This document shows, in pieces, positions 5,385 to 17,685 of a stretch of DNA of 32,000 nucleotides. The notes below the pieces were generated by a model. That model had not been told where the DNA came from. It worked only from the letters and a program-made list of their open reading frames with translations, and did not search any database. The translations under genes were made by a program, and so were the position numbers. This stretch comes from Paramicrosporidium saccamoebae KSL3 (taxonomy: Eukaryota > Fungi > Cryptomycota), in assembly GCA_002794465.1 (NCBI GenBank), contig MTSL01000179.1, forward strand, positions 5,205 to 37,204. The letters run 5' to 3'. Numbering within the stretch: position 1 is the first letter of the stretch; the number at the start of each line of letters is the position of its first letter.

Positions 5385-5517
5385 TATAATTATATACTAA
5401 GACGCATTTTATAGATTGCTACCCTCGACACTAGATTATGGAACGACCTTTTAAATTGTAACCACCAATTATCAGCGGGTACTCACAGATGCTTAACCCA
5501 ACACTCACTTGCCGGGG

Positions 5518-6765
5518 ATGCTAATGAAATTCGTAATATGCCTTGCTCTGTGTGGGGCAGTCTTGGGTAGTATCCAAAACCCAGTAGGCCTTAGAAATAT
5601 GGGAAACACATGCTACATAGCGTCAGTGCTCCAGCCACTCTTTCACGCCCCCTCTTTCCGTACCTCCGTCTTTTCGCATGCCTCTGACAGTACGCCGCAT
5701 GCAACCCTCTGCTCGCTCTTCTACCGACTGGCGGCTGGAGACAAAGCACCGGAGATGGACATTGATTTTTTACCGGCAGCAGACGTGGCCGGAAAGAAAC
5801 TATTTCAGGTTGGACGGGGTGATGATGCACAGGCCTTTTACCAATGGCTGACGGCTCATCTATCATGGACAAATGATCTCTTCAAGATAGAGTGGGAAGA
5901 GACCACCACTTGCAACGATATTCTGATTTCCAAGATAGTTGCTTCTGATACAGTCACTATCGGACAGGTCGTGAAGGACGTGCCAGTACACGAGATGCTT
6001 CGTGAAAGCGTGGAGGATGGCGTGAAAGGGTATAAAGTAGTAAAGAAGGACTTTACTGAAGCTCAGTGGGACGACTTGATGGAGAGGGGGGTTCCTGCAG
6101 AGGGACTGACTGGAGAGACACAGACCAGCATCACTCGTCGTGTTATCAATACTCCACCAATGATTGTCCTCCTTGCACACAAGTTTGCGAATACCCAAAC
6201 TCGAAAAGGAGATAAAATTGAGTATCACCAAACTTGGGACGGAACGAAATCTACCACCTTTAGCGAAACGTTTGTCCTGAATGGAGTAACCTACTACCTG
6301 CACGCCGTGACTGTCTATGTGAACAGTCGACGGAATGTGACCAATGTTAAACAAAGCCACCATTACAAAGCATACGTATGCATTGACCACAACACGAACC
6401 GTTGGTTCGAGTTTAATGATTCCGCTGCAACGCCTTCGAGCATTGCTAACATTGGTGATAATGGCTTCATGTTCTACTATGTTCGGGAAGACACTCGACA
6501 GGAATGGATAGACCTTGGCGCATTCGATATAAAATCAATCCCGAGTATGTACAGCGTTCTGGGACAGACGATGAATGCGCTTGTTGATGGACTTTCGATG
6601 CTGCTAGAGATGACGGGACTAGAACTACCCTCAACAAAACAGATAGTGAAGCTCGCTGCTGTCCCTGAGGAGGCTAAAGGTGTTCTAATCAAAGCTGATG
6701 ATGCACTTGACCGTGTTGAACACGATGAGAATAATGCAGAAACTGTTACTGATAACAAACAATAA
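5518..6765 (+). CDS. Putative secreted ubiquitin-specific protease (peptidase C19/USP fold), paralog 1
   Basis: Signal-peptide-like MKFVICLALCGAVLG; Cys box GLRNMGNTCYIASVLQPL; His box HHYKAY...WFEFNDS. Start is ATG 5518 or 5524. Confidence 0.8.
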   Translation: MLMKFVICLALCGAVLGSIQNPVGLRNMGNTCYIASVLQPLFHAPSFRTSVFSHASDSTPHATLCSLFYRLAAGDKAPEMDIDFLPAADVAGKKLFQVGRGDDAQAFYQWLTAHLSWTNDLFKIEWEETTTCNDILISKIVASDTVTIGQVVKDVPVHEMLRESVEDGVKGYKVVKKDFTEAQWDDLMERGVPAEGLTGETQTSITRRVINTPPMIVLLAHKFANTQTRKGDKIEYHQTWDGTKSTTFSETFVLNGVTYYLHAVTVYVNSRRNVTNVKQSHHYKAYVCIDHNTNRWFEFNDSAATPSSIANIGDNGFMFYYVREDTRQEWIDLGAFDIKSIPSMYSVLGQTMNALVDGLSMLLEMTGLELPSTKQIVKLAAVPEEAKGVLIKADDALDRVEHDENNAETVTDNKQ

Positions 6766-7190: not shown

Positions 7191-8432
7191 ATGTGGCTTT
7201 CGGTCGGTATTCTAATTGCCGCACTTATCACCCTCTCCCATGGCGCCGAGTCCAAGCAGCACAGCTCGGTGGGTCTTGTGAACAAGGGAAACAACTGCTA
7301 CATTTCAGCCATCCTACAGGCCCTTTACCATTTGCCTTCTGTGCGCGAGGCTGTGGTGCGTCAAAAGTCCAACTCTATTGTTCATACCACGTTGGCATCG
7401 CTATTCGCCCGTATGACGATGGGTACCTCGGCACAGGAAATGGACGCTGACTTTTTGGAGGCAGTGGATAGGACGAGCAAGGGATTCATTGGCTTGGCTC
7501 ACGAAGACGATCCTCATGCCTTCTTCAGCTATCTTCTGGGTCAGCACCTGCCCTGGGTCAATAACGACCAGATGATGTTTGACGTGGAGGAAACTATGGT
7601 CTATCAAGATGTCACGCTCACCACCCGGATAGCAAGGGAGAACATTCTCATTAATCACGTTTTGAGAGATCCCGCCATGCCAGTGCATTACGGGCTGGAG
7701 GAAACAATCGACGAAAATTTCGCGTTCAGCTTAACCGTAGCTGAGTGCATTAGCCTGTTTGGATCCGATTCATGTTCCTCTGATCCTCCCATCTCTCATT
7801 CTGACAGTGGAAGCGTTTCCGACCCGATGACCCTCCCTGTAACCCGCATAAGACGAGTCATCAGTACGCCCCCCATTCTCGTAATGCTGGGTGACAAGTT
7901 TAAGATGAATACTCCGCCGAACCAGCAGAACCAAAGTCGCCAAACAATGGCATTTGCGTCTAACTCGGGCAGACATTGGGATGCCTCCACCCAGACCCTC
8001 TATGATCGTGCCTTTGAGTTCCTAGGGAAGCGCTATTACCTCTATAGCACCGTCATTTACAAGCCGGGAGACGGGCTTGTCAAAGACCATTTTTTCACGC
8101 ATAGCTGTATTAATGCCGCCGAGAACCGCTGGGGCCTTTTTGACGATGGCATTGTCAAGCCTTCTGTTGAAACCTACGATCTGGGCAACAATCCGTTCAT
8201 GTTCTTTTACGTAGAAGAATCTCTCGTACAGCAATGGACGCAGATGCCGCCATTTACTGTGGATCAGATTGCTCTCCGGTATCGCTTTTTGGGACAGCTT
8301 TTTCAGTCTTTGGTGGATAGTGTCCATCTGATGATGCGTCTAACTGACGCGCCTTTCCCTAAACCAAGGGCCCCTATTGAATTTACCCCCCTCAAAGATG
8401 AGATAGTTGGCGCGTTGATTGAGGACGAATAA
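7191..8432 (+). CDS. Putative secreted ubiquitin-specific protease (peptidase C19/USP fold), paralog 2
   Basis: Signal-peptide-like MWLSVGILIAALITLSHG; Cys box GLVNKGNNCYISAILQAL; His box DHFFTH...WGLFDDG. Shares with paralog 1 a C-terminal extension (W..L/M..F....I...Y..LGQ....LVD.....T....P). Confidence 0.8.
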   Translation: MWLSVGILIAALITLSHGAESKQHSSVGLVNKGNNCYISAILQALYHLPSVREAVVRQKSNSIVHTTLASLFARMTMGTSAQEMDADFLEAVDRTSKGFIGLAHEDDPHAFFSYLLGQHLPWVNNDQMMFDVEETMVYQDVTLTTRIARENILINHVLRDPAMPVHYGLEETIDENFAFSLTVAECISLFGSDSCSSDPPISHSDSGSVSDPMTLPVTRIRRVISTPPILVMLGDKFKMNTPPNQQNQSRQTMAFASNSGRHWDASTQTLYDRAFEFLGKRYYLYSTVIYKPGDGLVKDHFFTHSCINAAENRWGLFDDGIVKPSVETYDLGNNPFMFFYVEESLVQQWTQMPPFTVDQIALRYRFLGQLFQSLVDSVHLMMRLTDAPFPKPRAPIEFTPLKDEIVGALIEDE

Positions 8433-8769
8433 CTGGATATGATGTTAGATGTGGGAACAGCCATATTAATAGGTAAGTAAACGGGTAATTGGAGACTCAA
8501 ATAGAGAGTCAGGAAAAAATCAAATGGATGCTCAAAACAAAGGTCAAACGGACGTGGGAAACTCAATGAACAATTAAACAAACAATTTCACCCTTATAAC
8601 GCGTTAATATTGTGAGGTGGTATACCCATGAACCAAGGATTCTGGTAGACGTAGTGGATTTATAACGCGCTATAAAATGTTGAAATGTTGTGTTGATCAT
8701 CATGTACCATCAGGAAAGGGGCCAGAGACATTAAGATATGATTAAATTAGCAATGTGAGATTAGAGTAA

Positions 8770-8815
8770 AAGACCCTTTATTGGTATTCCTGGCCCGTAG
8801 TTATACTATCTCACA
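8770..8815 (+). repeat. Family A element, copy 2
   Basis: AAGACCCTTTATTGGTATTCCTGGCCCGTAGTTATACTATCTCACA; 39/46 ungapped identity to the copy at 30931. Confidence 0.85.
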
Positions 8816-8934
8816 TGTTCCCTTTGTCGTCCCTTTGTCGTTCCTTTGCCGTCTCTGTTGCCTCTTTGCCATCCTTTTGTCGCCTGACCCGCTACGCACG
8901 CAGCAGGGCGTCTTGGAGCTCACAAATATGTTGT

Positions 8935-9731
8935 TTAATTATCAGGATCATCTGTTGATTGCTTTCCGGCCCACAATATGTAACGAGTCAACACATTGGC
9001 AAGCGACTTGATCACTACGACTGCCTCGTTGGCTAGTAAAACAATTCTAGAATTCTGACCAAGCTCGCCTTCCTCAGTGAATCTGCCAGGCAACGATAAC
9101 AGAAACGTTTTTAAAGCTTGCTGACCGGGCAGAGGGAGGACATATCCATTATTGTTGACGAGATCAACAACATTCCTAAGTGTCTGAACAACTTCCTTGG
9201 CAACGACTTCCCGGAGGTGCTGCACTCTAGCCATTGCCTGCACCTCTCTCGCTTGGACCGATTCACTCCATGTCTCCAGTCGCTCAGACACTCCTTCCTG
9301 GGCTCCTGCTACCGCGTTTCGCAGCCTCCCCAACAAAAAGTCAATATATGTTTCTGCATTATTTAGTCCCTGCAGAGTTCCTTCCATTTTGCGACGCATC
9401 TCAGCGGTGGGGACATAGGCGTTTTCAAGTCGTTCCAACTGGCGTCCAGCATAGCCATCGATGGTCTTTAGTTGTGGCTCAAAAGTTTCAGTGACCAAAC
9501 GCATTGAATATTCCACAGTACTGGCCCCCATTTGTACCAGACGGGAGCTGTCTTTTCCAGAGGCGTACACACGGGACAAGTGGTCCAAAGTCGAGGTGAC
9601 TAGTGCATATTCTGATAGTCTGCCAACTAGACCCGCAGAAACACCAGTGTCGGGAGCCACACTGGTCTCAGTCGCCTCGACTGATACCATGACCATCAAT
9701 ACCACCTACCCCGTCCACCCCCACAGGACAT
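8935..9731 (-). CDS. OPI1: Opi1-family transcriptional repressor (compact; probable 29-nt intron 9681-9709 after a 22-nt first exon)
   Basis: N-terminal block YASGKDSSRLVQMGASTVE...IDGYAGRQLERL and C-terminal block EVVQTLRNVVDLV...LP...KTFLLSLPGRF...RIVLLANEA match both conserved Opi1 regions. GTAGGT..TCAG intron puts ATG 9731 in frame; alternative ATGs lie at 9696 and 9690. Confidence 0.75.
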
Positions 9732-9736
9732 TGGAG

Positions 9737-9758
9737 CATGTGAAAATGGAATCACATG
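9737..9758. promoter_or_regulatory. Inverted pair of CATGTG E-boxes including a perfect ICRE/UAS-INO consensus upstream of OPI1
   Basis: CATGTGAAAA (9737-9746) equals TTTTCACATG on the minus strand, a 10/10 match to WYTTCAYRTG. A second TCACATG at 9752-9758 forms a 7-bp inverted repeat with an 8-nt spacer. Confidence 0.5.
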
Positions 9759-9984
9759 ATTTAACAATTATTTTAATAAAATATTATGTAAAAAGTACCC
9801 GTCCAATATTAATAGTCCCAATCCAGATATCCACCCCAACAAGCTAGATTTGCCCGAGGGTGGCCACCTATTAATGCGCGAGAATATTTATTTCTTAGAA
9901 GCGTCTTGATAGGCCACCGTCCTCATCTCCGCACACTAGTTATAGGATAACTATCAGGATTACCCTCACTACGCAACAGTTTAA

Positions 9985-10029
9985 TAGACCCTTTATTGGA
10001 ATCCGTGTTCCGTATATATACTCTTCACA
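9985..10029 (+). repeat. Family A element, copy 3
   Basis: TAGACCCTTTATTGGAATCCGTGTTCCGTATATATACTCTTCACA; ends 8 bp from the eIF2-gamma stop codon. Confidence 0.7.
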
Positions 10030-10036
10030 CTTGACA

Positions 10037-11483
10037 TTATCTTTGCGGGATCTCCAAATCAACCACCGCCCCGCGAGTAATCTTTCCCCACCCAATCAGA
10101 CGCCAATGGTTGTCGATACGTCGACTAAGGGCAATCTTTTCGCCAATCTCTGTGCAGGTGGGCTTGTTGAGGAGGATTTTGGCCATGTCGCCTTTGACAG
10201 CAAGCACTTTGCCGCCTGTGCAGGTGGAGCCAATATTGACCATGAGCGTCTCAGCTTTGGCAAGACGCTGCACCTTGAGATCTTCTCGAGTGTCTGCCCG
10301 CACTCCGAGGAGACGACGGAGGAGGAAATAATTAATCTCCACTTCGGAGTAGACGGGCGGCAGATGACCCACGGCTCCCAACACTTGACCAACAAGACGA
10401 TCGGCACGACAAAGAGTCGGATCAATCTTTGTGCCCACTCCAATCAAACCGCCAGGCACTGCAAAGGGAAGGTCATTGGCCTCGGCAAATAGAGAAACGA
10501 CGCGGGTAAAGATGGGACGACATACTGATTTTCCCTCCTCATTCTTCACAATAATACCCGGCCGCACTTCCACCTCATCACCAATCTTGAGCACTCCACA
10601 GAGGATACTGCCACCGGCAACTCCGCCCTTTAGATCCTGCACCTCGGAACCCGGCTTGTTGACGTCAAAGGAGCGGATCACAATCATCTTGGGCGGCACC
10701 GAGAAATCGCGTGGCGGTACGGGAATCTTCTTGACAATATACTCACAAACGGCGTCAATGTTGTACTTTAGCTGTCCCGAAATGGGAATAATGGGCGCAG
10801 ACTCGGCAGCTGTGCCACGGACAAAATCTGTAATGTTCTTGTGCTGCTCTTCAGCCACCGTTTCTCGCACCAAATCAATCTTGTTCTGCAAAATGAGAAT
10901 ATTCTTCAACTTCATAATCTCGACGGCGGCCAAATGTTCCGAAGTCTGTGGCTGTGGACAGGGCTCGTTGGCAGCGATCAGCAAAAGTGCGGCATCCATT
11001 ACCGCAGCGCCGTTCAACATGGTGGCCATCAGAATATCGTGGCCAGGGCAATCCACAAAGGAAATGTGTCTGCAATGTCAAGTATCAAGGACTGAGCGCT
11101 TACCTTAGCAATTGCATGCTGCCCCCACAGCCAGAACGCTCGCAGGGAAACGTCACCGGCTTGTCGCTTTTGTACGACCGATAGCATCCCGGACGGGGAC
11201 ACGCATTATTGTCACACTTGTAAATCTTGGCATTTGCATATCCAAGTTTGATGGTGATATTCCTCTCCAGTTCGTTCTTGAAACGCACCGTCTGAACACC
11301 CGAAATTGCCTTTACCACCGTAGACTTTCCATGGGCTACATGGCCAATAGTTCCTACAAGTTTAATAGTCACAGACGTCCATGTACCGATATTAATGGTG
11401 GCCTGGCGTTGGATAACTTCTGGCGAGAGGGCCGTCAGTTCATTGAGGTTCACCGAGGCGAGGGAGGAGGAGAGACTGTCCAT
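10037..11483 (-). CDS. GCD11: Translation initiation factor eIF2 gamma subunit; introns 11354-11386 (33 nt) and 11070-11103 (34 nt)
   Basis: QATINIG|[54 protein letters not shown] and HWRLIGWG are diagnostic. Both introns are GT-AG and restore the canonical sequence. Confidence 0.97.
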
Positions 11484-11668
11484 GGAATTTGGCAGTTCTG
11501 GACAAAACTTGAGCAGCCGGGGGTAGTCAAAGACGGAGGCTGTCAGTGGGGCAGTCTGCTTATTCACAGTACAGAATCCTTAAGGGCTCTGACACTACTG
11601 ATTGGTCAATATCGATCCCGGTTATATAGTATCCCGGTCGACTAAAGCAACCTTTCCTCAGTCGGTGA

Positions 11669-12190
11669 ATGCCGCCCAAACCCAAGAAAGACGCGGCAGA
11701 CACTTTTGGTGAGATGACATCCAACTCTAAAAATGAATCTGCAGCCCAAGTCGAAACAGAGACAGCAGTAGAGAGCAGAGAAAATGCGACTGGATATACA
11801 GTGGCAGGTCCTTCTACTTCCACGACCACACAATACTACACACCCGCTCAGTTCCTATCAAGCGGATATCATGCGCCGCATACGGCACATGCACCAACAT
11901 CTGGTGGCTATTCAGTGCCGCTAGCAGATTCCGACTATGCAACGTTTATGGCCCAGCACGGCGGACAGGTCGCTCCTCACGTAGTCTATGAAGCCAAACG
12001 AGCCACTCGTCAGATGGCCCACTATTTCGACGTTAGCCAATACAAGACGCAACTGGATCAGGGCACTGCTCCTGTTCCACCCGACCCCTCCACCCTCCCA
12101 AAACGACGGCCTACTAAAAAGGAGCTCGAGCAATTCAGGAAACGCAAGGAAGAACGCAAAAGGATACGTAACCGTTGGTTATTTGAATGA
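11669..12190 (+). CDS. Hypothetical basic-tailed, probably nuclear protein
   Basis: 173-aa ATG ORF. C-terminal RATRQMAHYFD...RRPTKKELEQFRKRKEERKRIRNRWL resembles a tail I associate with some fungal WW-domain proteins, but no WW domain is seen here. Confidence 0.7.
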   Translation: MPPKPKKDAADTFGEMTSNSKNESAAQVETETAVESRENATGYTVAGPSTSTTTQYYTPAQFLSSGYHAPHTAHAPTSGGYSVPLADSDYATFMAQHGGQVAPHVVYEAKRATRQMAHYFDVSQYKTQLDQGTAPVPPDPSTLPKRRPTKKELEQFRKRKEERKRIRNRWLFE

Positions 12191-12243
12191 ATCATTTCCA
12201 TTGGTCAATTGCCCCATAAATGGGACGATAACAAACAGCCGCC

Positions 12244-13503
12244 ATGGCGCCGCGTTTCCTTGATCGTCTGACCCAGAAACAGCGTCGGCCCAGCCGAATC
12301 CATCCCAAAAATGAGCCAACCCGCGATGATTCTGCACCCACCGTGCCCATCACACCGTGTGCCTTGGACAAGCACATTGAAGCACCGCTGCAGAGGAAGC
12401 GTAAGCTTATTACGAGTATCAACGGAGCAGTGAAGCGGGTGATGACTGGCTTTAAGAAGCTGACAATGCGAGATGTAGACTTGTCTATTGTGCATTCGGT
12501 AACATTCGAGCCGACAGTAGAGATGGTCACGACCCCAGAGCAGGAACTGAGATATCGGGCATTGAGACTCGATGAAATGTTTGGTCAGTTTTTAAGACAG
12601 TGCAGAGAGTTGACAGCCGCACAGGCTGAGCATATCTCTATCCCACCAGAACTTTTACAGGAAATGGCCTCGTATACAAAGCTCCTCCAGACTTGGTATC
12701 TAAAGGATGTACAGCCAGAAGTGGAACATGACCAACAAGATGAAAGCGACAAAGAGTGCCAATCCGAGGTGACTGACGCTGTCTGCTCATCAGATATTGC
12801 GGCCAATTCCACGACTATCCTTGACGCTACCACGGCCTCATCAGTAAACGAGTTTATTGATCTGTCTTATCAGGCAAAGGCGGCTCTGACAGAAATTGAA
12901 AAAGGAACTGTTGAAGCGGTCGAGAATAGCGATGAAGCCAACGATGTGACAATTGAGAATAGCGATCAAGCCAACGGTGTGGCAATTGAGAATGCCGATG
13001 AAGCCAACGGTGGGACGATTGAGAATGCCGATGAAACAAACAAAAAAGATGAAACGTTAGATACCGTGATGCATATTCTAGTCGAGGCCCCACAAGCCAT
13101 ATACATGCCCGAAGAACCTCTGGTATCAGAGGCCGATGTTATCTGCCAAGACGAGGTTATTTCTGTCATTCCCAAATCTCTGGTTCCAAATGATTCCATG
13201 CCAAGCCTGACTGGTCTGTTTGAAAAGCACAATTTTTCTAGTACTGAAGCTATTGATACTCTCTGTGACCTCGCCAATTCCAGGGCCATTCTCAGTGATC
13301 GTTCTGTTAGTACCGACATTTCGGACATTGGGATCCTCAGTGACCGCTCTGAAAATGCCAGTCTGACTTCAGTGCAACAGCGAACCAGTCGCTCCTCTTT
13401 TGCAAGCAACAGCAGCCGGCGTCGCATGGACCCGCATATCGCTTACATTGTGTCCCTATACGAAAGCATCCACACTCTTGTGGCCGACTCGGACTCTGAA
13501 TAG
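12244..13503 (+). CDS. Lineage-specific acidic/low-complexity hypothetical protein
   Basis: 419-aa open ATG ORF starting 53 bp after the previous stop; basic N-terminus, acidic centre, Ser-rich tail; no recognisable domain. Confidence 0.7.
   Translation: MAPRFLDRLTQKQRRPSRIHPKNEPTRDDSAPTVPITPCALDKHIEAPLQRKRKLITSINGAVKRVMTGFKKLTMRDVDLSIVHSVTFEPTVEMVTTPEQELRYRALRLDEMFGQFLRQCRELTAAQAEHISIPPELLQEMASYTKLLQTWYLKDVQPEVEHDQQDESDKECQSEVTDAVCSSDIAANSTTILDATTASSVNEFIDLSYQAKAALTEIEKGTVEAVENSDEANDVTIENSDQANGVAIENADEANGGTIENADETNKKDETLDTVMHILVEAPQAIYMPEEPLVSEADVICQDEVISVIPKSLVPNDSMPSLTGLFEKHNFSSTEAIDTLCDLANSRAILSDRSVSTDISDIGILSDRSENASLTSVQQRTSRSSFASNSSRRRMDPHIAYIVSLYESIHTLVADSDSE
12919..13041 (+). repeat. 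Coding tandem repeat, 33-bp unit x ~3.7
   Basis: VENSDEANDVT / IENSDQANGVA / IENADEANGGT / IENADETN. Confidence 0.9.
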
Positions 13504-13547
13504 ATGCTAATGTAGGAGCTGATGAATAGAATTCCGTCTTTATACAA

Positions 13548-13727
13548 TCATTGAGATCTCTTTAGATTTTCTTCAAGATTTCGCACAGCCTCCTCCCGTC
13601 GCCTTGTCAAAATGTCGCGTCGGCACATGAAAAATAGTACAGCACCGCTGCCCAACATTATTGCCCTACAGGTCATTGCACTGTGTATCAAATACCAAGG
13701 GATAAAAACTTCTTTCGGAGAAGACAT
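13548..13727 (-). CDS. Microprotein absent from the ORF track (49 aa spliced via 30-nt intron 13666-13695; 59 aa unspliced); DUF4748-like single-helix protein
   Basis: ATG 13727 to TGA 13548. Splicing GTATTT..AATGAC.CTGTAG gives MSSPKEVFIPWAIMLGSGAVLFFMCRRDILTRRREEAVRNLEENLKRSQ. Confidence 0.55.
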   Translation of the reverse strand: MSSPKEVFIPWYLIHSAMTCRAIMLGSGAVLFFMCRRDILTRRREEAVRNLEENLKRSQ

Positions 13728-13862
13728 GTTCTCCTAACTCTTAACTCTTGGCTTTTGACTGGCTCTCCTAGAACTTGTGAAGAAACGATCGAAAACGAAT
13801 GAAAAAATATTTATGCTCCTTTCCTTGTCAATCTCAGGCTTGTTGGGGCCAATTTCGCCGAA

Positions 13863-15692
13863 ATGGGACGCAAGCGCGCCCGCTCTTCCGGCAAAGAAAA
13901 AGTGTCCGATTCATTACCAAATGATACTGTGATTGATACGGAGACTCTCGCCGGCGTGGAGGAGCCATTGTTGGCTGGCACAGAAGGGCGCAAGACTTAC
14001 AAACACCCATACACTGTTGCTGGCGTGGAAGAGTATGGAACTCGCAAACACTCGCGCACACTCTCTGGAGTCGAGGAACCATTGCTGGTTGGTGCAGAAG
14101 AACACAAGGCTCGCAAATATCCGTACACGATATTCTTTATTATTGGCAATGAGTTTTGCGAGCGTTTCTCCTTCTACGGCATGAAGGCCATCCTCCCCAT
14201 CTATCTCACTTCCTACCTCGGGTTTCACGAATCCCACGCGACCACCATCATCCACACATTCAATTTCAGCGCCTACTTCTTTTCCCTTTTCGGAGGCATT
14301 CTCAGTGACAATTGGTTGGGAAAGTTCAAGACAATTCTGTACCTGTCCCTGGTGTATTGTGTGGGAAATGCAGTCATGTCAGTAACGGCGCTGCCTGGCG
14401 TTACGGGTATACCGCCTAATTGGTGGGGGATGGCGTTGGGGCTTTTGTTAATTGGAATCGGAACGGGCGGCATTAAGCCTTGCGTGGCATCATTCGGGGG
14501 AGACCAGTTTGAGCCGCATCAGAGCAAGGAATTGTCAGTGTTCTTTGCCGTATTCTACTTTGCCATCAATGCGGGATCAATGTTGTCCATGTTCCTGACG
14601 CCGCTACTTCGCAACAATGTCCACTGTTTTGGACAGCAGAGCTGCTATCCATTGGCATTTGGAGTACCAGCGGTGCTAATGTTTGTCGCATTGGTCGTAT
14701 TTGTGGCAGGGAGTGCATTGTACAAAAAGGAGCCGTCACGAAATAACGTCGTACTAATGTTTTTCTCTCTTCTTGGCACCGCTATTTTCAGAAAAATCAA
14801 GTCCATCTTTAAGAGTAATGATGACCGACACTACCCTTACTGGCTCTACTGCGCAGCTGACAAGTATGAGGCATCATTCATTGAAGATGCTCGCCGAGTG
14901 CTGACAGTGTTTCTTGTGTTTTCTCCAGTCTGTTTCTTCTGGGCGCTGTACGATCAGCAAGGATCCTGGTGGGTCTATCAAGCCGTCATGATGAAGAACA
15001 AGATGCACATTGCAGGTTGGAATGTGACCATCCTCCCAGAACAGATGGGACTATCCAATGCTGTGCTCATTTTAGTTCTCATTCCCGTGTTCAGCAAATT
15101 CCTGTACCCAAGCTTTGATCGAATAGGCAGGCCGATTAAGGCACTTTATCGGATTGGCTTGGGAATGGGCTTGGCCCTTGTCTCTTTCGTAATGGCAGCA
15201 ATCCTACAGTTTATAATAGTCGCACGCGGAACCTTTGATGTATCGCCCACCGATCCCACTGTGCAAGTATGTGTCTCGGGATGCGTCAACATTTTTTGGC
15301 AGCTCCCACAGTACTTTATCATCACGTGTGCCGAAGTCTTTCTCTCCGTCACAGGACTCGAGTTTGCCTACTCGCAAGCCCCCGCCAGCATGAAATCTGT
15401 TTGTCAGGCCGGCTGGCTACTCACTGTTGCTGGTGGAAATCTGATTGTAATTATTGTGACCCTAATCGATCCAATTAGCTGGTTCGGTCCTAAAAATGCA
15501 ATGGCCTGGAACTTCTGTCTCTGGACCGTCATTATGGCAGCCGGGACCTTTATCTTCGCCGGTCTGGCCTGTGGATACAAGTATCGGGAGGATGCAAACG
15601 AAACTGGTAGGGAGGAAGAGTACCTACCACTGGCGGCCACCAACTCCCAATTGAGTATCCAGTCAGATACTCCGTTAATTGTAAAAAAATAG
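13863..15692 (+). CDS. PTR2: Proton-dependent oligopeptide transporter (POT/PTR, SLC15A1/PepT-like)
   Basis: EFCERFSFYGMK (ExxERF), GTGGIKPCV, FGGDQF, FYFAINAGS and GLEFAYSQAPASMKSVCQAGWLL motifs; about 12 hydrophobic segments; intronless. Confidence 0.93.
   Translation: MGRKRARSSGKEKVSDSLPNDTVIDTETLAGVEEPLLAGTEGRKTYKHPYTVAGVEEYGTRKHSRTLSGVEEPLLVGAEEHKARKYPYTIFFIIGNEFCERFSFYGMKAILPIYLTSYLGFHESHATTIIHTFNFSAYFFSLFGGILSDNWLGKFKTILYLSLVYCVGNAVMSVTALPGVTGIPPNWWGMALGLLLIGIGTGGIKPCVASFGGDQFEPHQSKELSVFFAVFYFAINAGSMLSMFLTPLLRNNVHCFGQQSCYPLAFGVPAVLMFVALVVFVAGSALYKKEPSRNNVVLMFFSLLGTAIFRKIKSIFKSNDDRHYPYWLYCAADKYEASFIEDARRVLTVFLVFSPVCFFWALYDQQGSWWVYQAVMMKNKMHIAGWNVTILPEQMGLSNAVLILVLIPVFSKFLYPSFDRIGRPIKALYRIGLGMGLALVSFVMAAILQFIIVARGTFDVSPTDPTVQVCVSGCVNIFWQLPQYFIITCAEVFLSVTGLEFAYSQAPASMKSVCQAGWLLTVAGGNLIVIIVTLIDPISWFGPKNAMAWNFCLWTVIMAAGTFIFAGLACGYKYREDANETGREEEYLPLAATNSQLSIQSDTPLIVKK
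13944..14126 (+). repeat. Coding imperfect tandem repeat in the transporter N-terminus (23 aa + 15 aa + 23 aa)
   Basis: TLAGVEEPLLAGTEGRKTYKHPY / TVAGVEEYGTRKHSR / TLSGVEEPLLVGAEEHKARKYPY. Confidence 0.85.
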
Positions 15693-15727
15693 TTAATCTC
15701 GTGATAAAGTGCCGCATTAATGCATAA

Positions 15728-16132
15728 CTAATGTTTATGATTTCCTAAGAGGCCTTGCCGAACAGCCTCTCTTAGACGCTCATTCTCCCTCCTCAGTCCC
15801 TCAATGGACTCGTTGGCCATGCCCAGTAGTCGTGCCTGGCTACATCTTCCTGCACCCACCAGTTCCGCCATCCGAGCCAGCTCGTCTTTTATCTTCCCGC
15901 GACGCTTGTGTTCACTAGCGACGTGTCGCTCGCGGCGTTCTTGTTCGTCCAGACGCGGTGTAAGTGTACAGAGAAACTTTTCAATATAATCCAACTCCCG
16001 GAGGTCGAGTAAACGCGGTCCCTCTGCAGTGTGGTGTGGCATGGTCGCTGATGGCGCATCTATAGTAGGCAGTTCAGCTAAAAGAGAACCGTTAAAGCCG
16101 CAGAGATCCGTAATAGGACCGTCATCCGGCAT
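15728..16132 (-). CDS. Small bHLH transcription factor, Ino2-like (with putative Opi1-interaction motif)
   Basis: Basic region RRERHVASEHKRR (H-E-R class-B E-box signature), then helix-loop-helix and short zipper ANESIEGLRRENERL. Upstream LLDLRELDYIEKFLCTL resembles the Ino2 repressor-interaction domain. Confidence 0.8.
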   Translation of the reverse strand: MPDDGPITDLCGFNGSLLAELPTIDAPSATMPHHTAEGPRLLDLRELDYIEKFLCTLTPRLDEQERRERHVASEHKRRGKIKDELARMAELVGAGRCSQARLLGMANESIEGLRRENERLREAVRQGLLGNHKH

Positions 16133-16653: not shown

Positions 16654-17685
16654 ATGCAGCTTTATGGCTTTCTATGTCTCGCACTGTGCGTTCAGTGCAG
16701 CGTATCTAATGGTGGTCCAAGGAACACGGACTATTCTCGACTTGGCATGGAGGAACTGCTGCTGCTTCCAAAGACAATGCTGCTAGATAGCAATGGCCAG
16801 TATATTCCCATCTATCCACAGTGGGGATCGCAGCAATGCTCTGCAAATCTTTTCCACATGGAAAGCCCTTTGGGGAGAGGCGGCAATGCAGTGGTAGTCC
16901 GTGCTCAACACCGCGACAATGGCAAAACGGTGGCGATCAAGATTTTCACCGTTGATGATTCTGAGGATAATGTCGGTCTAATTGAGGCTATTCGGACGGA
17001 GGAAGTACTGTTGGCGTTGCTCGATGATCCAAGGTTCCCGAAGCTGTGGTGTAGCTTCAAAGAGGGACAACAGGTATTTTTGGTGATGCAATATCTCGAC
17101 GGCGTCAATTTGTTCACCGAACTCTGTAGTACACCCGTCCCGTTCCGGCTTAATTTCACCATAAGAGTCATGGCAGAGATAGTTGAAGCACTGGAATTCT
17201 TGCATCGTCGCCACATCATCCACCGGGATGTCAAGCTGGAAAATATAATTGTAACACAGGATGGCCATGTGTATCTGATTGATATGGAGCATGCTGTGTA
17301 TGCACCCGATGGTGCAACTCTGCCAGCAGGGACATCTTGCAACATGGCACCGGAGATGTGGGAGTCAAAAGGGTACGATGACGGAGTGGACATGTGGGCA
17401 CTGGGATTGGCACTCTATGAGATGACCACTCTCCGACATCCGTTTCAAAATTACCTCTCCTCAAATGATAGACTGTTTGAGGCTATAAGCCGAGGCGTGC
17501 CTGCTACTGGCGAGCCTAATGTTGACCGTTTGCTAAAAAGATTATGCAGCTTGAACCCGGCGGAAAGGTGGTCATTTGCGAATAAGAATCTGGATTTAAT
17601 CAAACTACAATTACATACCATGATAGCATACTCTGAGTTAACGGATTCTACCATAGGATCCGTATCTGAACTGACAGACTGGTAG
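16654..17685 (+). CDS. Putative secreted Ser/Thr protein kinase (AGC-like, DFG replaced by DME)
   Basis: Signal-peptide-like MQLYGFLCLALCVQCSVS; GRGGNA loop, VAIK, HRDVKLEN, IDMEH, MAPE, DMWALG. Confidence 0.85.
   Translation: MQLYGFLCLALCVQCSVSNGGPRNTDYSRLGMEELLLLPKTMLLDSNGQYIPIYPQWGSQQCSANLFHMESPLGRGGNAVVVRAQHRDNGKTVAIKIFTVDDSEDNVGLIEAIRTEEVLLALLDDPRFPKLWCSFKEGQQVFLVMQYLDGVNLFTELCSTPVPFRLNFTIRVMAEIVEALEFLHRRHIIHRDVKLENIIVTQDGHVYLIDMEHAVYAPDGATLPAGTSCNMAPEMWESKGYDDGVDMWALGLALYEMTTLRHPFQNYLSSNDRLFEAISRGVPATGEPNVDRLLKRLCSLNPAERWSFANKNLDLIKLQLHTMIAYSELTDSTIGSVSELTDW

Follow-up and report, generated by a model that had tools for sequence, protein, structure and literature searches.

The 32-kb window analysed here (the whole stretch of 32,000 nucleotides, contig MTSL01000179.1, positions 5,205 to 37,204) carries two minus-strand genes in a gene-dense region of eukaryotic DNA with ~48% GC. 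One codes for a 251-residue protein of the Opi1 family, the other for a 134-residue basic helix-loop-helix (bHLH) protein which resembles the yeast activator Ino2 (Table 1). The proteins Opi1, Ino2 and Ino4 are a textbook case of membrane-lipid sensing coupled to transcription. An initial annotation of the window, made from its sequence, had placed an Opi1-family gene and a 134-residue bHLH gene on one strand at this locus, and both open reading frames (ORFs) are indeed present there. In the following we compare the two proteins with their yeast counterparts, describe the conservation of their linkage and of a candidate regulatory site between related loci, and weigh the possibility that the locus represents a reduced form of the fungal Opi1/Ino2 switch.

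Table 1. Genes and sequence elements discussed in the text, with their positions in the window
Feature	Position	Strand	Remarks
UCH ubiquitin hydrolase 1	5509-6765	plus	tandem with UCH 2
UCH ubiquitin hydrolase 2	7191-8432	plus	tandem with UCH 1
Opi1-family gene, 251 aa from ATG at 9690	8935-9690 (ORF to GTG at 9705)	minus	ORF and PF08618
E-box 2, TTTTCACATGC	9737-9747	minus	47-57 nt upstream of the Opi1-like ATG
E-box 1, ATCATGTGAT, near-palindrome ATCAYRTGAT	9750-9759	minus	60-69 nt upstream of the Opi1-like ATG
eIF2-gamma	10037-11567	minus	introns 11354-11386 and 11070-11103
ORF without Pfam match, 173 aa	11669-12190	plus	
ORF without Pfam match, 419 aa	12244-13503	plus	
PTR2/POT transporter	13863-15692	plus	Pfam
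bHLH gene, 134 aa	15728-16132	minus	ORF; pan-fungal Ino2/Ino4-like family
bHLH basic region HVASEHKRR, helix 1, 5-residue loop, helix 2 and zipper-like extension (aa 61-131)	15740-15952	minus	
RID/TAD2-like amphipathic helix LLDLRELDYIEKFLCTL (aa 41-57 of the bHLH protein)	15962-16012	minus	10 residues ahead of the basic region
Protein kinase	16654-17685	plus	

The bHLH protein displays the segment LLDLRELDYIEKFLCTL at residues 41-57 and the basic region HVASEHKRR at residues 70-78. In S. cerevisiae Ino2 (UniProt P26798, supplement of PMC8137143), residues 118-134 read LLSTNESNAIEQFLDNL, which is the peptide that the initial annotation had quoted. The published Opi1-binding site of Ino2, its repressor-interaction domain (RID), comprises residues 118-135 and overlaps activation domain 2, with S120 and T121 fitting the register (10.1101/228536); the measured activation domain covers residues 100-161, with the core TNESNAIEQFLDNLISQDMM (PMC8137143). 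Recomputed with the real Ino2 sequence, the ungapped comparison of the two segments yields 8 identical residues out of 17, as had been claimed. The H-V-x2-E-x2-R-R type of the basic region is likewise borne out, with 7/9 residues identical to Ino4 (HVSSEKKRR) and 5/9 to Ino2 (HVQMEKIRR; both sequences from the supplement of PMC8137143).

Conservation of the motif in orthologs had been named beforehand as a point on which the comparison with Ino2 could fail. It is present in all orthologs and across fungal phyla, at the same position relative to the bHLH. The four close relatives of the 134-residue protein (40-84% identity) all possess it, and among the bHLH orthologs it is (nearly) invariant, taking the form RLLDLRELDYIEKFL(C/E)TL and, in the most distant lineage, QLLG.SELFYL.DFF.NL. 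A HMMER search of 1.84 billion representatives with the bHLH profile gave 875 matches; among the best 150 of these, the basic region is preceded by 45 residues or more in 126 proteins, and 61 of the 126 carry the motif N-terminal to the bHLH, at a distance from the basic region of 10 (in the window protein, the shortest) up to 386 residues. Named carriers are Quaeritorhiza (Chytridiomycota), Mortierella, Smittium (Kickxellomycotina), Entrophospora (Glomeromycota), Golovinomyces and Thermocarpiscus (Pezizomycotina) and the basal Saccharomycotina yeast Trichomonascus, and wherever the nearest homologs of the bHLH family are named, they come from fungi. The Trichomonascus protein (P0074) scores above both the bHLH_INO2 (26.7 bits) and the bHLH_INO4 cut-offs of Pfam, and one member of the cluster is labelled 'heteromeric Ino2p/Ino4p transcription factor' by JGI. 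What is conserved in the motif across fungi are the polar positions (E46; E/D/T after I/L) and the spacing.

A hidden Markov model (HMM) of the motif, built from 46 instances of the family with Trichomonascus excluded, matches residues 117-135 of Ino2 with 20.2 bits, a score reached by none of 20,000 shuffles (best shuffle 6.6). When the model is built from the window clade alone, its best match in Ino2 lies inside the RID (127-134) and is equalled by 2 of 20,000 shuffles, and the window-clade profile is collinear with the RID and the bHLH of Ino2. The AlphaFold (AF2) model shows the two bHLH helices at residues 61-93 and 99-131 (pLDDT 82-96) and the motif as a helix of residues 44-57 (pLDDT ~80-89) directly N-terminal of the bHLH, with residues 1-35 predicted to be disordered. 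As judged from these sequence comparisons, the similarity of the motif to the Ino2 RID is beyond chance, and the 134-residue protein appears to be a family-level ortholog of the Ino2 activator, stripped down to a bHLH-zipper and one amphipathic acidic helix.

The second gene requires a correction of its start. Position 9731, from which the initial annotation had read it, lies outside the reading frame of the ORF and could be joined to it only by splicing of a 29-nt GT..AG intron (~9709-9681). The ORF itself extends to a GTG at 9705; in-frame ATGs appear first at 9696 and 9690, the latter being the start of the corresponding database protein (P0001, 251 aa). This protein reaches 55.2 bits with the Pfam model PF08618 (Opi1) against a cut-off of 29.7, and 8/8 orthologs are likewise above the cut-off; in the window protein, aa 23-96 align with HMM positions 3-81 and aa 97-205 with positions 220-322. 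The Perilipin model (PF03036) gives 24.4 bits (cut-off 33; E 1.8e-5), with a match to the N-terminal PAT-like part alone, which is seen in 4/8 orthologs. With the Perilipin model under its cut-off and the Opi1 model well over its own, an identity of the gene as a perilipin was rejected, in agreement with the initial assignment.

Within the N-terminus (aa ~21-96; window 9400-9630), the scores of the Opi1 HMM (positions 3-81, 27 bits) and of the PAT region of the Perilipin model (positions 8-88, 24 bits) are nearly equal. The sequence of yeast Opi1 used here matches neither the N-terminal part of the Opi1 HMM nor PAT. There are thus hints that non-yeast Opi1 proteins may carry a perilipin-like lipid-surface module at their N-terminus.

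Past residue 96, AF2 predicts exactly four long helices (96-137, 142-184, 190-205 and 212-244; pLDDT 53-85). Proteins of the Opi1 family contain a leucine zipper (LZ; residues 139-166 of S. cerevisiae Opi1, ScOpi1), an 'uncharacterized conserved region' (UCR; 220-256) and an activator-interaction domain (AID; 321-379), which together form a four-helix bundle (PMC10709064). The predicted helices match this family fold, with helix 96-137 as the equivalent of the LZ, helices 142-184 and 190-205 as the UCR, and helix 212-244 as the equivalent of the AID. The ScOpi1 sequence used for these comparisons is not a database copy; it has 404 aa, scores 121.7 bits with PF08618 and agrees with 20/20 residues cited in PMC6371920 and PMC10709064. 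In hhalign, ScOpi1 216-260 pairs with residues 162-205 of the window protein, i.e. the UCR, in which P186, P188, L197, L200 and P201 do not vary. Of these residues, L197 and L200 stand opposite ScOpi1 L252 and L255, mutation of which inactivates yeast Opi1, and R172 stands opposite K226. The C-terminal helix SRIVLLANEAVVVIKSLANVL aligns with ScOpi1 329-350, inside the AID, in one register for four orthologs (0-6 of 2000 shuffles), with A223 and I227 opposite ScOpi1 S339 and V343. In the LZ, the zipper a/d positions are all hydrophobic in the register given by the Pfam coordinates. As far as sequence can tell, the 251-residue protein is a family-level ortholog of Opi1 that keeps the LZ-UCR-AID core.

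In the same Pfam-coordinate register, ScOpi1 N150 is opposite a clade-invariant glutamate, E113 (codon 9352-9354). An ionic residue at position 150 of yeast Opi1 blocks zipper dimerisation and results in a constitutive repressor (PMC10709064); given this glutamate, the Opi1-like protein may be regulated differently from yeast Opi1. Several elements of the yeast protein are absent. The 251-aa sequence contains neither an FF dipeptide nor an acidic-tract FFAT; C. albicans Opi1 likewise lacks FFAT, which is therefore not universal in the Opi1 family. The basic helix that binds phosphatidic acid (cf. ScOpi1 109-138) is missing as well, the equivalent segment GRQLERLENAYVPTAEMRRK having equal counts of acidic and basic residues, and on reading the Opi1-like sequence no polyglutamine, no yeast-type (OSID-like) N-terminus and no clear nuclear localisation signal was found. 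Short C-terminal pieces of the protein have no Pfam match. A word-indexed profile search with the Opi1-like alignment returned the same 8 proteins only, and a scan of metagenomes for further Opi1-like loci confirmed none.

The physical proximity of the two genes, also part of the initial claim, is retained in six lineages. The syntenic loci of relatives come from metagenomes and one unannotated NCBI assembly and are designated here by L numbers. L001 and L002 (54-55% protein identity) show the order helicase, bHLH (+), Opi1-like (-), eIF2-gamma, two unnamed ORFs, PTR2, UCH and UCH. The window contains the same set of genes, with the block from the Opi1-like gene to PTR2 inverted between bHLH and UCH and the pair ~6 kb apart. 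The inverted block (Opi1-like, eIF2-gamma, two ORFs and PTR2) corresponds to window 8935-15692 versus L001 10960-17575, and its breakpoints fall in short intergenic stretches at about 8433-8934 and 15693-15727. The pair, adjacent and convergent in L001/L002, has this arrangement also in L011 (46% identity; eIF2-gamma, Opi1-like (+), bHLH (-)) and in L009/L010, where the bHLH gene (+) is followed by the C-terminus of an Opi1-like gene on the opposite strand (116 bits). In L005/L006 (40% identity) the members of the pair are separated by two ankyrin genes and remain within 5-6 kb of each other. These arrangements across the compared loci indicate a convergent adjacent pair as the ancestral state of the clade, and that of the window is derived. 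With a few thousand genes per genome, the chance of finding the one Ino2-like bHLH within a ~20-gene window of Opi1 is, by our estimate, on the order of 1%. The Opi1 slot of L015, a more distant lineage, is occupied by a 133-aa ORF with marginal similarity (8.4 bits) and no Pfam match, at best a marginal candidate for an Opi1-like gene.

Besides the two proteins, the initial annotation had proposed a target site, and a conserved candidate E-box is present in the promoter of the Opi1-like gene. Within the window, TCATGTGAT (9 nt) and ATCACATG (8 nt) are each found a single time, at 9751-9759 and inside ATCATGTGAT. L005-L008, L011 and L012 each have a single ATCAYRTGAT, which in all cases precedes the start codon of the Opi1-like gene by 45-105 nt, and L001 has TATCACATGCT at -61 of the Opi1-like gene. 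Together with the window, five lineages have the element in this promoter. Between the 120-nt upstream regions of four loci (window, L001, L006 and L007), ATCACATG is the sole common 8-mer; when 120-nt segments were drawn at random from these sequences in sets of four, an 8-mer of any kind was common to the set in 1/5000 trials. The flanks of the site are symmetric (ATCA...TGAT), as for a dimer with equivalent halves, and enclose the asymmetric CATGTG known from the yeast ICRE. The second E-box, TTTTCACATGC, fits TYTTCACATGY, which we take to be the yeast ICRE/UAS_INO pattern. TTCACATG and CACATG show no enrichment over the window as a whole.

Further occurrences of these elements were noted. 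L001 has a second ATCACATG at the start of a 412-aa gene, and the sole ATCACATG of L015, at 9593-9600, is located in the divergent helicase/bHLH promoter and not beside the Opi1 slot. An ATTGG (inverted CCAAT) precedes the conserved E-box by 20-45 nt in the window (9795-9810), L006 (~416-424) and L007 (~8698-8706), which suggests that ATTGG box and E-box may form a composite promoter module.

Some features of the remaining genes of the window were noted as well, and no Rfam family has a match in it. The eIF2-gamma gene contains two GT..AG introns of 33 nt and 34 nt on the minus strand, and excision of both restores the conserved protein sequence at each junction; introns as short as these are a lineage marker. 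The window comes from a compact eukaryote, and an early-diverging, reduced fungus is a plausible host. The two ORFs without Pfam match are probably real, lineage-specific genes: L001/L002 show ORFs of comparable length (143 and 412 aa) at the corresponding places, and unnamed ORFs are found in this part of L007 as well. The tandem UCH pair is also found in L001/L002. The N-terminal extension of the PTR2/POT transporter (13950-14130) holds about three copies of an imperfect peptide repeat, ~AGVEEPLL.G.E..K..K.PYT. To the right of the kinase follow an MTR4/SKI2-like helicase, a 2-oxoacid dehydrogenase E2, an otubain, an RSE1/CPSF_A-type protein and a second kinase.

The reading that we favour, and to which we assign a moderate probability, is that the window encodes stripped-down, family-level orthologs of the two proteins that make up the fungal Opi1/Ino2 switch, i.e. 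an activator/anti-activator pair with negative feedback. It builds on the homology of both proteins, on the motif shared across phyla and on the conservation of E-box and linkage. The bHLH protein would bind CAYRTG E-boxes of the ATCAYRTGAT type, possibly as a homodimer, because the conserved site has symmetric ATCA flanks. A search for an Ino4-type partner, proposed at the outset, found no second bHLH in the window or in the five syntenic loci, each of the six containing one bHLH. Activation of transcription would proceed via the LLDLRELDYIEKFLCTL helix, the sole conserved element of the protein that is not DNA-binding, and the Opi1-like protein would dock on this helix through its C-terminal AID-like helix (AID/LZ face) and so mask activation. 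Through the E-box upstream of the Opi1-like gene, the activator would probably induce its own repressor; a comparable negative feedback acts on yeast OPI1. Any lipid signal would have to differ from that of yeast, because FFAT and the basic phosphatidic-acid helix are missing, and the PAT/perilipin-like N-terminus would be the likeliest part of the protein to sense a membrane or lipid droplets. Compared with the initial annotation, the observation of the two genes is confirmed and the proposal of their homology is supported more strongly than when it was first stated; a 'circuit' with a lipid role is plausible.

A number of results weigh against this reading. The AF2 model of the Opi1-like protein is of low confidence overall (pLDDT 58.7), and a Foldseek search with it against the PDB returned generic helical bundles only, the match to the TIP47 C-terminus (E 0.6) being not significant. 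Alignment of the clade with ScOpi1 by hhalign recovers the UCR only, with 12% probability, and the pairwise alignment of the LZ to ScOpi1 is not significant, its register coming from Pfam coordinates alone; all these comparisons with yeast use the ScOpi1 sequence that is not a database copy. Mortierella and Smittium have no Opi1-like gene within 10 kb of the bHLH, and no E-box that would point to autoregulation was found upstream of the bHLH gene in five lineages. Moreover, the conserved ICRE-like E-box is located upstream of the Opi1-like gene only, and the available sequence includes no lipid-synthesis gene. In the main rival account, the two genes are neighbours without a functional connection, the motif is a generic PhixxPhiPhi acidic activation helix (recruiting Mediator or TFIID), the Opi1-domain protein is a surface protein of lipid droplets or membranes, comparable to A. 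oryzae LdrA or the perilipins and with no role in transcription, and the linkage is inherited microsynteny. Residues 100-161 of Ino2 are a measured activation domain in which activation domain 2 and RID overlap, and conservation of the motif could therefore reflect coactivator binding alone; yet a 17-residue pattern that extends from chytrids to budding yeast, with its polar positions and spacing kept, is rare for activation domains. A member of the PF08618 family, LdrA, binds cytoplasmic and nuclear lipid droplets via an amphipathic helix, and a comparable location of the window protein would accord with the resemblance of its N-terminus to the perilipin PAT region and with the absence of FFAT, phosphatidic-acid helix and clear nuclear localisation signal. 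However, the protein retains an AID-equivalent helix together with the residues required for repression in yeast, and its promoter contains the conserved E-box. Besides, a lipid-droplet role and a repressor role can go together: yeast Opi1, too, is found as a coat on nuclear lipid droplets. As to linkage, the pair lies inside a wider syntenic block with eIF2-gamma, the MTR4-like helicase and PTR2, in which the bHLH/Opi1 junction has been broken twice and the Opi1/eIF2-gamma junction never. The linkage belongs to general microsynteny, with selection for clustering at most a possibility, but the chance of such proximity is small by the above estimate. A further point against unconnected neighbours is that the A. 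niger homologs interact in two-hybrid assays. Overall, we regard unconnected neighbours as a rather unlikely explanation of the locus.

A different objection concerns the bHLH protein, which could be a USF-, Max- or Pho4-type factor serving another programme (e.g. phosphate, sulfur or growth genes), with the E-box of the Opi1-like gene recognised by another bHLH protein from elsewhere in the genome. In the initial annotation the protein had been grouped with Ino2/Ino4, and by the domain alone it comes closer to USF/Max: the bHLH of the clade scores 34-38 bits with USF/Max and 15-17 bits with Ino2/Ino4, and its best matches among solved structures are USF2, USF, Max, MITF and SREBP. Pfam bHLH_INO2 (PF23179) is not reached (13.8 bits, cut-off 23.4; orthologs 18-22 bits), and even the general HLH model remains below its cut-off in the window protein (18.1 versus 20.7 bits; orthologs 33-38 bits). 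H-x3-E-x2-RR alone is common to USF-/Max-type bHLH proteins, and H-x3-E-x3-R is the general class-B signature of the basic region. The regulon of the family is labile too, given that INO1 of C. albicans is not under the control of Ino2/Ino4 and Opi1 and that the Yarrowia homologs (Yas1-3) control alkane genes. Where the grouping stands is in the architecture: motif plus bHLH tie the protein to the Ino2/Ino4-like family and not to USF/Max. The basic region, of the form HV(A/S)SE.KRR, shares 7/9 residues with Ino4, and a different bHLH would have to be sought beyond six syntenic loci with only one each. We consider this alternative improbable.

If the locus does encode an Opi1/Ino2-type pair, a broader proposal can be made, to which we lean only tentatively. 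The Opi1-Ino2 interaction might be an ancestral fungal module, in which a PAT-like lipid-surface protein masks the activation helix of an undivided, homodimeric bHLH of the Ino2/Ino4 type, and which is present here in near-minimal, linked and feedback-wired form. The RID-AID contact would then predate the split between chytrids and Dikarya. A docking helix kept beside the bHLH from chytrids to yeasts, together with a minimal linked Opi1, would shift the origin of the switch to early fungi, and this conservation across phyla would account for the isolated two-hybrid result from A. niger. It seems not to be generally recognised, because the literature reports no recognisable Ino2 homolog beyond part of the Saccharomycotina. 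A solved structure of the RID-AID contact was not found in the literature; the pair described here would be the smallest natural system for solving it, and proteins of 134 and 251 aa are suited to structural and biochemical dissection of how a repressor masks an activation domain.

Several known systems bear comparison with the pair. A. oryzae LdrA shares with the window protein a PF08618 domain outside budding yeast, and perilipins (PF03036) share with it the PAT-like N-terminus. It differs from them in a Perilipin score below cut-off, and neither an 11-mer repeat region nor a C-terminal amphipathic helix of the LdrA type was identified in it. S. cerevisiae Ino2 resembles the bHLH protein in its C-terminal bHLH, the HV..E..RR basic region, the upstream helix LL-x3-E-x3-[IL]-E-x-F-L-x2-L and the presumed CATGTG-type target. 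It is, however, 304 aa long compared with 134 aa, and its motif lies ~105 residues from the basic region, compared with 10. The window protein furthermore lacks a conserved TAD1, stays below the bHLH_INO2 cut-off and has a basic region closer to Ino4. Ino2 partners with Ino4, whereas no Ino4-like partner is in view here and the symmetric flanks of the site suggest a homodimer.

S. cerevisiae Opi1 (404 aa) is considerably longer than the 251-aa protein, which is without FFAT or an FFAT-like motif, basic phosphatidic-acid helix, polyglutamine and OSID-like N-terminus, has instead a PAT/perilipin-like N-terminus and carries an invariant glutamate opposite N150. Both proteins nevertheless pass the PF08618 cut-off, share the four-helix LZ-UCR-AID core and have an E-box in their own promoter, and L197, L200 and P201 (UCR) as well as A220, A223 and I227 (AID) of the window protein correspond to positions functionally required in yeast. 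Outside Saccharomyces, the A. niger bHLH An02g04350 ('ino2') homodimerises, binds the Opi1 homolog An15g02370 in two-hybrid assays and acts on the E-boxes of ino1 and cho1 (PMC6962311). The A. niger proteins, like Yas1, Yas2 and Yas3 of Yarrowia, are several times larger than those of the window and are not reported to be linked, and a docking motif in them may be surmised solely from their Pezizomycotina relatives P0052, P0090 and P0135. What these systems share with the locus described here is the combination of a bHLH protein with a protein of the Opi1 family outside Saccharomyces, and in both of them the two partners are reported to interact.

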